Under the pieces are notes generated by a model. That model was not told where the DNA came from and made no database searches. It worked only from the letters and a program-made list of their open reading frames with translations. Of a stretch of DNA of 64,000 bases, positions 3,356 to 11,400 are shown in pieces. Position 1 is the first letter of the stretch; each line of letters starts with the position of its first letter. Where the stretch lies: positions 162,750,001 through 162,814,000 of the forward strand of contig NC_088792.1 of NCBI RefSeq assembly GCF_011386835.1, in the 5' to 3' direction. A program made the position numbers and the translations under genes. The DNA comes from Chrysemys picta bellii (taxonomy: Eukaryota).

Positions 3356-4258
3356 ATGGCCACAGCTCCGCAGCCAGAAGAAGAGGCGGTGGTGATGGAA
3401 GGAGAAGACTCACTGAAAGGTTTTGAATCCTCTCCACTGCATTTAGATAGGGATGTTGGAGGAGACAGTCTGACCCAGGGTGTTGCAGCTGCTTGCCCAC
3501 ACTCAAAACAGGATATAGACTCTCAGGAAACAGATGATCTGGTGAAGTGGCTCCTCCTCCAGCTTCTGGAAGGGGAGAGGAGGCGCAAGGAGGCAGAGAA
3601 AAGGCGGGAGGAGGCAGAAATAAACTTTCAGCAATTTCTCCTGGAGTTGGAAAAGAGAGCTAACAAGTTGGCTCTGAGCTCCCAGGTCAGACCTGGAGAA
3701 GCACTCCACCCTCATGTAACTTCTCCAGACCACATAGAGTCATCGTGCTCATTCTGGATACACATTCAGAGAGTGTATCAGTGGCTGAAAGACCAGTGGC
3801 CCCTACGTATGAGTCTGTGTCTCCCAAGGCAAGTCCAAGAGACTCATTGCAGTGAGGTAAGTGAGGCTGAGCACTATGCAGAAATGTATCGGTACAGGTT
3901 TAGGGAGTACAGATTCCAGGAGACAAAGGGACCCCAGGAGGCTTACGTTCAATTATCCGAGCTGTGCCACAAGTGGATCCAGCCCAAAAGCAAGAGTGCA
4001 GCATGGATTGCTGACCTGCTAATCATAGAGCAGTTCCTGGAGATCCTCCCACATGATGTTCAGACATGGGTTAGGAGGAACAGGCCAGACACTGGGAGTA
4101 AGGCTGTGTCCTTGGCAGAGTACTTCTTGGCCATAAAGGAGCATGCTCAGTGCTCAAAACTGGTAAGGCCTCCAGGATGTCCTGTGAGGGAGAAATGTAG
4201 GGCTGGAAAAGCAGGTAGTGGGATTATGACTTCAAGGACCACAAATGCACTTTCTTAA
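3356..4258 (+). CDS. Gag-derived SCAN-domain protein (300 aa; extended-SCAN / Gmr1-like capsid homolog) nested in the BAG4 locus
   Basis: Uninterrupted ORF with ATG in strong Kozak context (gacATGG). aa ~175-262 YRYRFREYRFQETKGPQEAYVQLSELCHKWIQP..ADLLIIEQFLEILPHDVQTWVRRNRPDTGSKAVSLAEYF match the SCAN pattern (RxRF..GPxEA..L.ELC..W..P..LL.LEQFL.ILP..Q.WV...P.....AV.LAE). aa 60-105 form a predicted coiled coil. aa 124-174 (DHIES..WLKDQW..L..Q..EHY) resemble the Gypsy Gag capsid N-terminal domain. Confidence 0.8.
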   Translation: MATAPQPEEEAVVMEGEDSLKGFESSPLHLDRDVGGDSLTQGVAAACPHSKQDIDSQETDDLVKWLLLQLLEGERRRKEAEKRREEAEINFQQFLLELEKRANKLALSSQVRPGEALHPHVTSPDHIESSCSFWIHIQRVYQWLKDQWPLRMSLCLPRQVQETHCSEVSEAEHYAEMYRYRFREYRFQETKGPQEAYVQLSELCHKWIQPKSKSAAWIADLLIIEQFLEILPHDVQTWVRRNRPDTGSKAVSLAEYFLAIKEHAQCSKLVRPPGCPVREKCRAGKAGSGIMTSRTTNALS

Positions 4259-4296
4259 GAGAAACTGGGCAGCTTGCACACATGGTCACATAGCCC

Positions 4297-4420
4297 TAGG
4301 GTGACCAGATGTCCCAATTTTATAAGGACAGTCCTGATTTTGGGGTCTTTTTCTTATATAGGCTCCTATTACCCCCCACCCCCTGTCCTGATTTTTCACA
4401 CTTGCTGTCTGGTCACCCTA
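4297..4420. mobile_element. 124-bp hAT MITE
   Basis: TIRs TAGGGTGACCAGA...TCTGGTCACCCTA; perfect 8-bp TSD CATAGCCC at 4289-4296 and 4421-4428. Confidence 0.9.
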
Positions 4421-4487
4421 CATAGCCCTGAGCATATGCTGCACTGTGGGTGGAGGGGTGGGGATTGGCTTAGATGCTCTCATCCCT

Positions 4488-7540: not shown

Positions 7541-8395
7541 TCTGTGATTCTATAAGGGACCTCAGGAAGTTGTCTAATCCAGCCCCCCAACCTCCTGTCT
7601 TTCTGGGGCAGGATTTAAGTATACCTAGACAGCAGGTTGGGAGTTTGACAGGTTAGACAATGATGGGGATTCCACAACCTCCCTTTCAACCTATTCTAGT
7701 ACGCAATACTTGGTTAGAAAATTTTTCCTAATATCTCCCTTGCTGCAAATTAAGCTGATTACTTCTTGTCCTTCCCTTGATGGACATGGAAAACAATTGC
7801 GTGTTGTCCTCTTCGTAACGACCTTTCACGTATCTGAAGACTTAGCATATCCTCCCTCAGCCTTCTCGAAACGAAATATGCCCAGTTGTTTCAACCTTTC
7901 CTCAGAGATCAGGTTTTCTAAACTTTTTATAATTTTTATTGCTGCCCTCTGGACTGCTCCAGTTTGTTCACATCTTTCCTAAAGTGTGGAGTCCAAAACT
8001 GGACACAATTTTCTGGATGAGTTTTCTGGCCAGTTTTGAGTAAAGCAGAACAATTCCCTTCCATGTCTTACAACCAACATTCCTGTTAATACATCCCAAA
8101 ATGACATTTGCCTTGTTCACAACAGCATCACATTGTTGACTCATATTCCATTTGTGACCCACTGTAACCTCCAGATCCTTTTCAGCAGTATTGCAGCCTA
8201 CTCAGTTATTCCCTGTCTTGTATTTCTGCATTTGATATTTTTCCTTCCTAGGTGCAGTCCTTTGCACTTCTCTACATTGAATTTTATCTTACTTATTTCA
8301 GACCAGTTTTCAAAGTGATGTTGACAAATTGGTATTCTAATCCTGTCCTCCAATGTGCTCGCAGCCCCTCCCACATTCAATCTGTGTCCATCTCT
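7541..8395 (-). mobile_element. CR1 LINE 3' fragment (degenerate)
   Basis: Minus-strand peptides LEDRIRI..ENWSEISKIKFNVEKCKGLHLG and QQCDAVVNKANVILGCINR match the CR1 ORF2 C-terminus; CR1-type 3' tail near 7550-7620. Confidence 0.8.
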
Positions 8396-8422
8396 CAAAT
8401 ATGTTCTCTGCTTGTTTTTCAG

Positions 8423-11400
8423 GGACTGGAGTCTCCCTACACAAATGGAGCCTATGGCGCACCTGGGGCTGCTCCACACTATGCTAATCTGCCACAGTCA
8501 AACACTTACTATTCTGGGCACTCTCGGGCCTCCTACCCGGCAGAGTCTCCGAGCATGTACCGACCGCCATCGGCAGCCTCGCATTGGCATTATCCCCCAC
8601 CAGACTGCCCCCCGGAAGGCCCCTCTCTCAGGAGGCAGGCCCCAGGATACTCCCCACCACCGGTAAGGAAGCTAGTACAAGAAATACATGCTTCCTTTGG
8701 GAATATGCTTGGGGCTGGTGTGAGTACAACTCAGCTCACTATTGGATATAGCCCTTCTGGAGCAAAGGTTGGCATATGCTTGCCTAAGGGCAGCCTGCCC
8801 CTGCAGCTATCAGCCATTCAGGTCTGAGCCCTAGAAGTGCACTACTTAGCTGGTGCTCCTGGCTCCAGCACGGGAAATGTTTATCCTGAGGCTCATCTCA
8901 TGCCCCAGGTCTCTCATCTCTTGCAACACAGCCCAGTATCTTGACTGACACTGTGCTGACTTAGACTGCAGCTAAACTACATAAATGGCCAAGAGATCCA
9001 GCCATGCCCACTCTTATAAAGATGTGTAACCACTCCCTTGGCCTAGGACTTATAATTAATAGGCTGACATGTCAGAGCCAAGGTAGCTGGTCTTTGTGGC
9101 TCTTCACAAGGAGTGTTTAGTAGGAGTGGAGAAGCACGTCAACAGGTATTTTCAATGACTGAATGAACATGACTTTGAAGGTACTACCTTCATTTCCCTC
9201 TTCCTGCAGACCCCAGGTATGCCTGTCCCACACTATCCATATGGAGGAGATACCAACCCTGGCATTCCACAGCAAGGGCCACCACCACAACCAAGACCCC
9301 AGGATGAATCGTGGGCTTCCTCTGGCATCTATGGAATGCAGCCACGTTACGCCTGGCCTGCTGCTTCGACACCCCAAGGAAGTCCATTTGTTTCAGAATC
9401 CTCTCCATCCTGGCCTGGCAATGGAGCCCCTTCTCCTCATCCTCCAGCTCATGATACAAAGGTAAAGATTTAATGCTTTCAAGATTCTTTGACACTTTCT
9501 GGTGCCTATCTTAACCCAGCCATGTGGGCCACTGCACAGCAGTGCAAAAATCCCTTCACCAGAAGCTAAGCGTGCTGCTTTTACAGTGCTTCTAGCTCCC
9601 GCTGGTGCAGGGAAGAAGAGATCTTGCTTGGAAATCCAATCCTGTTTAGTATTTACGTACTGCTTTTACAACTTCCGAACGCTGTACAAGGCTAAATAAT
9701 TGTAGAGTGAGTCTGTCAGTCAGGGTGAGCTCTCTGACTGCAGGTCTGTGATCAGACCACTAGACTACACTGCCTCCCTGAAAAACACATGTATTTTTCA
9801 TTTCTTTGAAGTGCTTCCACCTTTCTCCCCCTCTGTTAAAGCAATGGGTTCATACTACATAGAAACAAACTAATAAAAACTAGGAATTCTCATAATATTT
9901 TAGATCCATTAACTTGGATATCCATAAATAATATCCAGAGTTATACTTAATGCAAAAAACTAAAGGGAGGTATTGGAGGGGATATCAGATCTCATGCTCC
10001 AGGTCTTAAAACAGTCTCTCATTAGTAGGGATTAGGATGAGACCTTTATGGGGGGCAGATCATCCCATATCTGCGTGCTGCAGGGTTTCTTGCATCTTCC
10101 TCTGAAGCATCTGGTGCTGGTCACTGGGAGCCAGGAGACTGGACTAGAAGGACCTGTCCTGAGCCACACGCAATTGCTGTGTTCCTGTCCAAGTGAACTC
10201 CTGGACACAGGAATCCTTTATTAGAGACTTTACTAAAAATTAATGTTGTGGGAATAACAGATTCTGTTCCTTCCTAGTCTCACCATTCTCCTCTTTACAG
10301 TTAGAGGCCCTGGCTACACCAGGATCAGATCTCTGGAAGGTACAACTGTGTTGACAAAGTACTTGCTAGCAGGGTTCTAATGTGGAGGGATAGCTCAGTG
10401 GTTTGAGCATTGGCCTGCTAAACCCAGGGTTGTGAGTTCAGTCCTTGAGGGGGCCACTTGGGGATCTGGGGCAAAAATCAGTACTTGGTCCTGCTAGTGA
10501 AGGCAGGGGGCTGGACTCAATGACCTTTCAAGGTCCCTTCCAGTTCTAGGAGGTGGGATATCTCCATTAATTATTATTTTTATTATCAATAGCATGGCCA
10601 TGAATTTGTCATCTGGGAATAGTTATAAAATTGTGTAATACACTCCATTTCCAGGGAGTGTATATCTCTCATGATCCTCTGAAATACATCCATACTTACC
10701 AGAGGAATTGGGCTAGAATCCTGCTAGCAAATATCATGGTTAAACATAGCTGTAGCAAGCATAATCCTGACCCGACTGTGGACTATTTCACAGCTGTCGC
10801 ATTGTCATTCTGCAGACACAGAGTTTTGTGAACCAGATGTGGTTCCTCTAACTAGTTTGTTCTTAAATAGGTCAAAGACTTGAGCACTAGCTGTCTCTGA
10901 GTATTCCTTCTTTGGCTTGTTTATTGGCAGCAATGCTTATGTAAGAAGGTTATGTGAGTTTCACTTTATTAGGTCACAGCATATTATGACATCAAGGTGG
11001 ATGACAGTCTCAAAGTGCAGGCCTCATCCTGAGTAACTTCCATTGCCTGAACCCTTTTTGCACTGCCATCCTGGGCATGCTGCACATCTTCCAAATGAGC
11101 AGGGAGGCAGACTGGCCCTGCTGCTCAGAGATCTGCTTGCATTCCCTCTTTGATGCAGGATGTGGGATAAGAAAACTGATGTTGAAGGAAACACATTTTA
11201 AAACCTCTGCTTGTTTCTGATTTAGGATACTACTTATGACAAACCAGACCAAGGAGCAAACCACAACAACTACTTCCCAGAAGTCAATCATCAGCCCTCT
11301 GGGACTATGAATGATCATAAGTCAACTCAATTCAACACCAAACCATCCCATTTCAATCCCAAAGTGCAATACAGTGCACAGCCCCAAATGTATGATAATG

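Follow-up and report, generated by a model that had tools for sequence, protein, structure and literature searches.

A capsid-derived SCAN exon in intron 2 of turtle BAG4: evidence for exonisation and for a SCAN-BAG4 form that is probably minor and unselected

We analyzed a 64,000-nucleotide (nt) stretch of the Chrysemys picta bellii genome (NCBI RefSeq assembly GCF_011386835.1, contig NC_088792.1, positions 162,750,001 to 162,814,000, forward strand), referred to here as the window; positions are counted from its first letter. In this window, intron 2 of BAG4 harbors a capsid-like open reading frame (ORF) in sense orientation that encodes a complete SCAN domain. We consider it probable that this ORF is a capsid relic which is genuinely exonised, and that its chimeric products are an unselected by-product. 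A SCAN-type Gag/capsid ORF would have been inserted in sense into BAG4 intron 2 in the common ancestor of emydids, geoemydids and sea turtles. Donors with exon ends at 3419, 3856 and 4162 would pair with the normal exon 3 acceptor at 8423, and the resulting alternative 5' parts of BAG4 mRNAs would replace exons 1 and 2 or be inserted after them. The 3419 form would be out of frame, the 3856 form would encode 167 capsid-derived residues followed by BAG4 residues 104-432 (no SCAN), and the 4162 form would encode a 598-amino acid (aa) SCAN-BAG4 protein. The splicing would be real and its coding content incidental. The SCAN-BAG4 form is probably a minor, unselected isoform; it looks rare, and splicing from either donor observed in RNA excludes the SCAN domain.

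The RNA evidence comes from Logan contigs, which are assembled sequences and not raw reads, of four runs over the region 3300-9299, with 15 of 26 splice joints listed. Runs X1 and X14 are from C. picta bellii. Runs X5 and X6 are Trachemys-like: their contigs carry seven of the ten differences between the Trachemys scripta elegans assembly and the window within 3300-4300, and seven of the eight differences in the run X6 contigs across the ORF are Trachemys differences. Run X6 contains two joints between the ORF and exon 3, 3419^8423 (depth 196) and 3856^8423 (depth 99, with the Trachemys-type T at 3856), and both are exact GT..AG joints. The exon 3 contig of this run has a depth of 292 and the contig over 3300-3420 a depth of 282, close to the sum of the two joints; most exon-3-containing transcripts in that sample therefore appear to pass through the alternative exon. 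Another contig (3828-4162, depth 20) stops precisely at 4162, and position 4200 is not covered in this run. This is the pattern expected from use of the third donor and suggests that it is used in vivo. If the contig does reflect that donor, the SCAN-bearing path accounts for at most ~6% of the depth of the three forms in run X6. The joint 4162^8423 is not among the 15 joints listed for the four runs. Each joint between the ORF and exon 3 was seen in one contig of one run, the Trachemys-like run X6 from a sister genus, and the joints listed for the two Chrysemys runs include no in-frame chimeric junction. Contigs of runs X1, X14 and X5 extend across the donors without splicing, at a depth close to that of the intron. 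The depth in run X1 is 25 over the ORF vs 17-21 over the intron, so this unspliced cover looks like pre-mRNA. The exon 3 contigs of the same three runs begin at 8420, which indicates an upstream partner ending in CAG, i.e., canonical exon 2. The joint 8662^9210 is present in all four runs.

The window starts ~1.6 kb past canonical BAG4 exon 2 and includes neither exon 1 nor exon 2, so the ORF is in intron 2 and the numbering of exon 3 in the first-pass annotation, which was made from the letters of the window, is right. Exons 3 to 5 (Table 1) are 100% identical to C. picta bellii BAG4 residues 104-432 (XP_023964285.2), and exon 5 encodes the BAG domain (PF02179, E=5.9e-20). The acceptor at 8422/8423 (ttttcag/GGA; the slash marks the exon boundary) is common to canonical exon 2 and the ORF donors. 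That annotation had described this acceptor as phase 0 and had pointed out a donor, CTG/GTAAGG at 4162/4163, in phase 0 after codon 269; the sequence confirms both, and the exon matches BAG4. It had also recognized nothing but transposable element (TE) remnants, and in particular no coding exon, from 4163 to 8422, in agreement with our search. Joining 4162 to 8423 in silico yields the in-frame product of 598 aa that had been predicted, ending in the BAG4 C-terminus. Two further donors, 0 and 1, were not mentioned there. With donor 0 the frame stops after 42 aa in the in-silico joining and is out of frame with exon 3; the BAG4 frame is closed by a TGA (3414-3416) just upstream of this donor. 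Donor 1 is located nine codons before the SCAN domain and its in-silico product has 496 aa, with the SCAN excluded. The GT dinucleotide is kept at all three donors in all six turtles that carry the insertion. Conservation of the donor at 4162/4163, which had been suggested as a check, is thus seen in six of six.

Table 1. Features of the BAG4 region in the window (all on the plus strand).
Feature	Position	Strand	Basis or remark
Probable 5' part of alternative exon	2920-3355	+	putative acceptor accag/G at 2919/2920
Capsid-like ORF, 300 codons	3356-4258	+	complete SCAN domain inside
Donor 0, AAG/GTTTTG, exon end 3419, phase 1 relative to ATG 3356	3417-3425	+	RNA joint
Donor 1, GAG/GTAAGT, exon end 3856, phase 0 after codon 167	3854-3862	+	RNA joint
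SCAN domain (PF02023), aa 176-259	3881-4132	+	Pfam E=1.4e-29
Donor 2, CTG/GTAAGG, exon end 4162, phase 0 after codon 269 (807 nt)	4160-4168	+	sequence
Remainder of intron 2	4163-8422	+	TE remnants; no coding exon found
BAG4 exon 3, 240 nt, phase 0 at both ends	8423-8662	+	identity to BAG4
BAG4 exon 4, 252 nt	9210-9461	+	identity to BAG4
BAG4 exon 5, coding part	11226-11723	+	BAG domain ~11499-11714; stop codon 11721-11723

The ORF starts at an ATG with a purine at -3 and G at +4, preceded 24 nt upstream by an in-frame stop. Its SCAN domain scores 102 bits (cut-off 27) and covers model positions 2-85 of 90. The closest sequences with a solved structure are the SCAN domains of ZNF24, ZNF42, ZNF174 and PEG3 (E=7e-21 to the ZNF24 structure 3lhr). 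In the AlphaFold2 model of the ORF, residues 1-55 are disordered, a single long helix spans 56-108, helices of low confidence follow at 124-164, and the SCAN domain occupies 170-268 with a predicted local distance difference test score (pLDDT) of 76-90. A Foldseek search with this model returned SCAN domains on top and capsid C-terminal domains next (Arc, MOAP1, Rous sarcoma virus, Ty3 and murine leukemia virus); the target-normalised template modeling score is 0.60-0.73 for the Arc C-lobe, MOAP1, the two viruses and Ty3. Residues 1-175 gave no Pfam match with E values up to 10 allowed. Residues 52-293 are colinear with proteins that combine SCAN and an aspartyl protease (P0049, P0050 and P0052; 32-38% identity), some of them with a zinc knuckle and reverse transcriptase (RT)/RNase H; the Gag-protease protein P0049 has 32% identity (E=2e-26). 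Residues 53-269 are colinear with the SCAN zinc-finger protein P0084, and here the similarity ends exactly at 4162. By these comparisons of predicted protein sequence and fold, the capsid origin of the ORF is clear. The stop codon TAA (4256-4258) is private to Chrysemys; the other five turtles (Trachemys, both Mauremys and both sea turtles) have GAA or GAT and the frame continues. Compared with the Gag-type and zinc-finger SCAN relatives, ~13-14 residues before the first SCAN helix are missing in the ORF (about aa 168-177, 3857-3885), and this gap falls at most ~10 codons downstream of donor 1.

The insertion may have occurred by direct TE insertion or by copying of a host SCAN exon, the similarity to Gag and to SCAN zinc-finger proteins being about equal. 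Gmr1-like/Gmr30-type elements, which have the SCAN homologue in their Gag, are reported to be abundant in turtle genomes, and SCAN itself is the captured capsid C-terminal domain of a Gmr1-like element in a KRAB zinc-finger gene (10.1101/2025.03.03.638093); a passage in PMC10516033, citing Emerson and Thomas (2011), gives the same origin. No long terminal repeats (LTRs) were found at the locus, with zero direct repeats of at least 40 nt in 1000-8400. A tblastn search with Gag-protease and Gag-pol proteins matched only 3629-4234, i.e., the ORF itself, and detected no pol remnant; the zinc knuckle, protease, RT and integrase of an LTR retrotransposon copy were not found at the locus.

Both in-frame forms exist as database models in relatives. 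In Mauremys mutica and M. reevesii, BAG4 isoform X1 (497 aa, NCBI) consists of ORF residues 1-168 followed by GLESPY... and reads ...THCSD/GLESPY, the donor 1 type without SCAN; M. mutica isoform X4 is isoform X1 with exon 3 skipped. M. reevesii isoform X4 (XP_039379125.1, P0006, 423 aa) reads ...AQCSTL/GLESPY..., exactly the donor 2 junction. It starts at an internal Met and not at the ORF ATG, and its precomputed Pfam annotation is SCAN plus BAG. In Dermochelys the unspliced ORF is annotated as "ZSCAN12-like" (313 aa) within the BAG4 gene range, and Ensembl annotates a SCAN-only protein in Chrysemys, Terrapene and Gopherus. The same ORF has thus received three public treatments in Mauremys and Dermochelys: the N-terminus of "BAG4 isoform X1", a SCAN-BAG4 "isoform X4" and a separate "ZSCAN12-like" gene. 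The 497-aa Mauremys fusion, searched against the protein collection within a length range of 273-870 aa, did not retrieve a 598-aa SCAN-BAG4 protein; the fusions retrieved were M. mutica isoforms X1 and X4 and M. reevesii isoform X4, with M. reevesii isoform X1 as a cluster member. When 121 residues straddling the SCAN/BAG4 junction were used as query, every fragment retrieved was either SCAN-only or BAG4-only; transcript-derived fragments crossing the junction were not among them. A connection between SCAN and BAG4 was not found in the literature searched. The splice from 4162 to 8423, which the first-pass annotation had put at its center, therefore stands in part: the M. reevesii isoform X4 model, the GT kept in six of six turtles and the contig end at 4162 speak for it, but the joint itself is unlisted in the four runs. 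Three Ensembl-type models (P0004, P0005 and P0008) with further acceptors at ~3815-3838 and upstream pieces at ~3008-3225 were set aside; none was verified with reads, and GT is lacking at the donor implied by the single junction examined, one of P0008.

Six hard-shelled cryptodires (Chrysemys, Trachemys, two Mauremys species, Dermochelys and Eretmochelys) carry the ORF at this position, and BAG4 intron 2 of Carettochelys, Emydura and Alligator lacks it. The intron is 1.9-5.4 kb long in the latter three vs 8-10 kb in species with the ORF. LSM1 lies head to head upstream of BAG4 in relatives, and the LSM1-BAG4 order with the ORF within BAG4 was seen in Dermochelys and Mauremys. This distribution indicates that the ORF entered after the split from the softshell-type and side-necked turtles and before the split of sea turtles and pond turtles.

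Selection was examined in the six species with the ORF, using BAG4 exons 3-5 of the same six for comparison. The pairwise ratio of nonsynonymous to synonymous changes (dN/dS) over the whole ORF is 0.5-1.2, or 0.7-1.2 when the Mauremys pair, with six differing sites only, is left out. The maximum-likelihood estimate of this ratio (omega) is 1.25 for the ORF; omega=1 is not rejected (2*dlnL=1.0), while omega values of 0.5 and 0.3 are both rejected (2*dlnL=19.2 and 48.7). By part, omega is 1.28 in the N-terminal region and 1.16 in the SCAN domain. BAG4 exons 3-5 give an omega of 0.37, with omega=1 rejected (2*dlnL=19.1). Variable sites are distributed 36/33/30 over the three codon positions in the ORF, with no third-position excess, vs 19/8/43 in BAG4. 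Between Chrysemys and Dermochelys the ORF segments diverge by 3.3-9.1%, the intron by 5.5-10.2% and the BAG4 exons by 3.2-4.2%. Conservation of the alternative-exon region does not exceed that of the intron around it. The frame is broken in two of the six species by frameshift deletions: M. mutica has a 19-nt deletion inside the SCAN domain (window equivalent 4050-4068) and Eretmochelys a 20-nt deletion in the N-terminal part (3811-3830). A domesticated fusion would be recognized by an open frame across the clade together with omega below 1, and this combination was not found. Strong purifying selection has been reported for the SCAN domains of zinc-finger genes (10.1101/2025.03.03.638093), and none was detected on the SCAN domain here. 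Six upstream ATGs, at 2950, 3155, 3204, 3216, 3323 and 3326, each open a short upstream reading frame between 2920 and the ATG at 3356. Given the neutral drift, the frames broken in some species, the upstream ATGs and the minor share of the SCAN form, the protein-coding content appears to be incidental, and these data suggest a lack of function.

Several observations weigh against reading the exonised relic as a mere by-product. In run X6 nearly all exon-3 transcripts come via the alternative exon, which is much for mere noise, and it is from this single run that the minor status of the SCAN form is read. The whole frame is open in four of the six species, two of the four indels have lengths divisible by three, and all three donors have GT in every species. 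There is no in-frame nonsense change among ~104 substitutions, where ~5 are expected (P ~0.004, or ~0.02-0.03 after allowing for the choice of the open ORF of the window). This gives a weak hint, from sequence comparison, that in some lineages the openness of the frame matters and the residues do not.

A tentative alternative, to which we assign a modest chance, is that the insertion acts as a regulator at the RNA level and that the long ORF is irrelevant. The segment from 2920 to 3419, 3856 or 4162 would be a poison cassette exon or an alternative leader after exon 2. The canonical BAG4 frame entering at 2920 meets a stop at 3067-3069 after 49 codons, and this would turn BAG4 off or toward an N-terminally truncated product from the first Met of exon 3. 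A 505-nt contig of run X6 has its letters 385-505 on 3300-3420; its start would be at 2916 if it is colinear. Positions 2916-2919 read CCAG, the same four letters as the end of canonical exon 2, and a de Bruijn contig would break at CCAG if exon 2 joins 2920, which makes an acceptor at 2919/2920 and a 5' edge of the alternative exon at 2920 reasonable. Runs X6 to X8 rank highest in their study for the ORF and do not appear in the list of runs containing 2250-2915. The commonest joint, 3419^8423, yields no fusion, and the agreement of joint depths with exon 3 depth in run X6 also fits this explanation. However, an intronic promoter explains the same depths, and the acceptor is placed by a contig whose first 384 letters are not displayed. 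The AG at 2919 is present in the four testudinoids but is AA in both sea turtles. The polypyrimidine tract at 2919 is poor, there are three further AGs between the putative branch site and 2919, and the region shows only the conservation of neighboring intron.

Selection for an open frame only would explain the missing nonsense changes despite omega ~1. In pond turtles and relatives a tissue-specific switch might then swap the BAG4 N-terminus for a capsid module and produce a self-associating Hsp70 nucleotide-exchange factor. The module may be the 167 residues with the 50-residue helix or the 269 residues with SCAN. We regard such a switch as unlikely.

It is less credible still that the 598-aa SCAN-BAG4 protein is a selected, lineage-specific product which self-associates via SCAN and regulates Hsp70 via BAG, and we consider this very unlikely. 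In its favor, both splice sites have phase 0 and join into an intact product, the M. reevesii isoform X4 model contains the junction, the SCAN domain is complete by Pfam and well modeled (pLDDT as above), and nonsense changes are fewer than expected. Against this, omega for the SCAN domain is 1.16 where zinc-finger SCANs are reported to be under strong purifying selection (10.1101/2025.03.03.638093), and the M. mutica SCAN is frameshifted. The sequence collections yielded neither the 598-aa protein nor a junction-spanning fragment, the M. reevesii model begins at an internal Met, and the 4162 joint is unlisted in the four runs, with the SCAN path at ~6% of the run X6 depth. The first-pass annotation had proposed a lineage-specific oligomerising Hsp70 co-chaperone; with an omega of 1.25, intron-like divergence, frameshifts and six upstream ATGs, this proposal finds no support.

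Nor do we give much credence to a stand-alone SCAN-only gene nested in BAG4 and translated from unspliced transcripts. The Dermochelys "ZSCAN12-like" and Ensembl annotations, the contigs unspliced through all three donors in runs X1, X5 and X14, and the start codon context (-3 purine, +4 G) agree with it. The neutral evolution and frameshifts do not, and neither do the variable position of the stop codon and the pre-mRNA-like depth of run X1 (25 over the ORF, close to the 17-21 of the intron). It is scarcely believable that there is no real splicing, with the joints being assembly chimeras and the NCBI isoforms prediction artifacts: the data are contigs and not reads, with a single contig of a single run behind each joint, but both joints have precise GT..AG ends where exon 3 is annotated to begin, one of them matches a model that NCBI built independently for a different genus, and their depths add up to that of exon 3.

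Other features were noted in and around the gene. Within the remainder of intron 2, a relic of a hAT transposase C-terminal dimerisation region lies at 5047-5262 (minus strand, Pfam E=2.7e-12), surrounded by nested inverted repeats at 4900-6067 with arms of 72-176 nt that are 80-85% complementary. A short, transcribed interspersed repeat at 4297-4420 is very abundant in all four RNA runs (summed depth up to ~41,000); it has many differing loose ends at 4420/4421, and all contigs break there, directly past the ORF. On the other side of the ORF, window positions 1-600 are a G-rich minisatellite with units of 26-72 nt of the GGCAGGG/GGCTGG type, followed at 640-900 by a block of repeated ctatttaaagggcc-like units. 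Both segments are unalignable to the Dermochelys or Mauremys intron and look like an insertion of the Chrysemys lineage in BAG4 intron 2. In the BAG4 exons, the Trachemys-like contigs have two in-frame insertions, TTC after 8511 (runs X5 and X6) and CCACCACCA after 9278 (run X6 only), which represent length variation of the Pro-rich region between close relatives. Downstream of BAG4, a 489-aa ORF at 23374-24843 (plus strand) matches RVT_1 (E=3e-26) and belongs to an element of the long interspersed element (LINE) type. A very GC-rich segment at 21700-22600 has overlapping long Pro-rich minus-strand ORFs as well as repeats of PPGPRYTPSPPP-like units. This segment, possibly a CpG island or low-complexity repeat, gives weak spurious tblastn matches with the Pro-rich part of BAG4.

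Under the explanation we prefer, exonisation of a capsid relic as an unselected by-product, the locus would be a dated example of the raw material for domain captures: a capsid ORF in sense orientation within an intron, with phase-compatible donors, from which chimeric mRNAs have been produced over a long period without selection at the protein level. The turtle entries named "BAG4 isoform X1" and "X4" are probably not conserved proteins, and such annotations should be used with caution. If SCAN-BAG4 were made and used, it would represent capture of the SCAN dimerisation module by a non-zinc-finger gene and a novel route to an oligomeric Hsp70 co-chaperone. We know of no other SCAN capture by a non-zinc-finger gene.

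The arrangement resembles that of SCAN zinc-finger (ZSCAN/SZFP) genes in having a capsid-derived SCAN exon with its own start codon and a donor a few residues past SCAN that joins downstream host exons. It differs from ZSCAN genes in that the partner is BAG4, with only TE relics and BAG4 exons and no zinc-finger or KRAB exons found downstream, in that ~120 extra capsid-like residues are kept upstream of SCAN, and in that purifying selection is not seen here and the SCAN-less splice form is dominant. The colinearity of aa 52-293 at 32-38% identity is shared with the Gag of Gmr1-like/Gmr30-type Ty3/gypsy elements; unlike those elements, the turtle locus contains just one orthologous copy, which is fixed within an intron and has no LTRs, zinc knuckle or pol remnant. 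The transposase-capture model of host-transposon fusion genes was reportedly set out by Cosby and colleagues in 2021. As in host-transposon fusions and TE exonisation generally, a TE coding segment lies in sense in an intron, a phase-compatible host exon is downstream, and a TE-internal donor is combined with a host acceptor. Established host-TE fusion genes show purifying selection and conserved frames, in contrast to the turtle SCAN-BAG4 locus. BAG family proteins are also known for diversity of N-terminal isoforms, for example the alternative-start isoforms of BAG1. The variable part at the turtle locus, unlike that of BAG1, would come from a retroelement exon, which is known from sequence and RNA contigs; the predicted in-frame products nevertheless share with the BAG1 isoforms a variable N-terminus joined to a constant C-terminal BAG domain.

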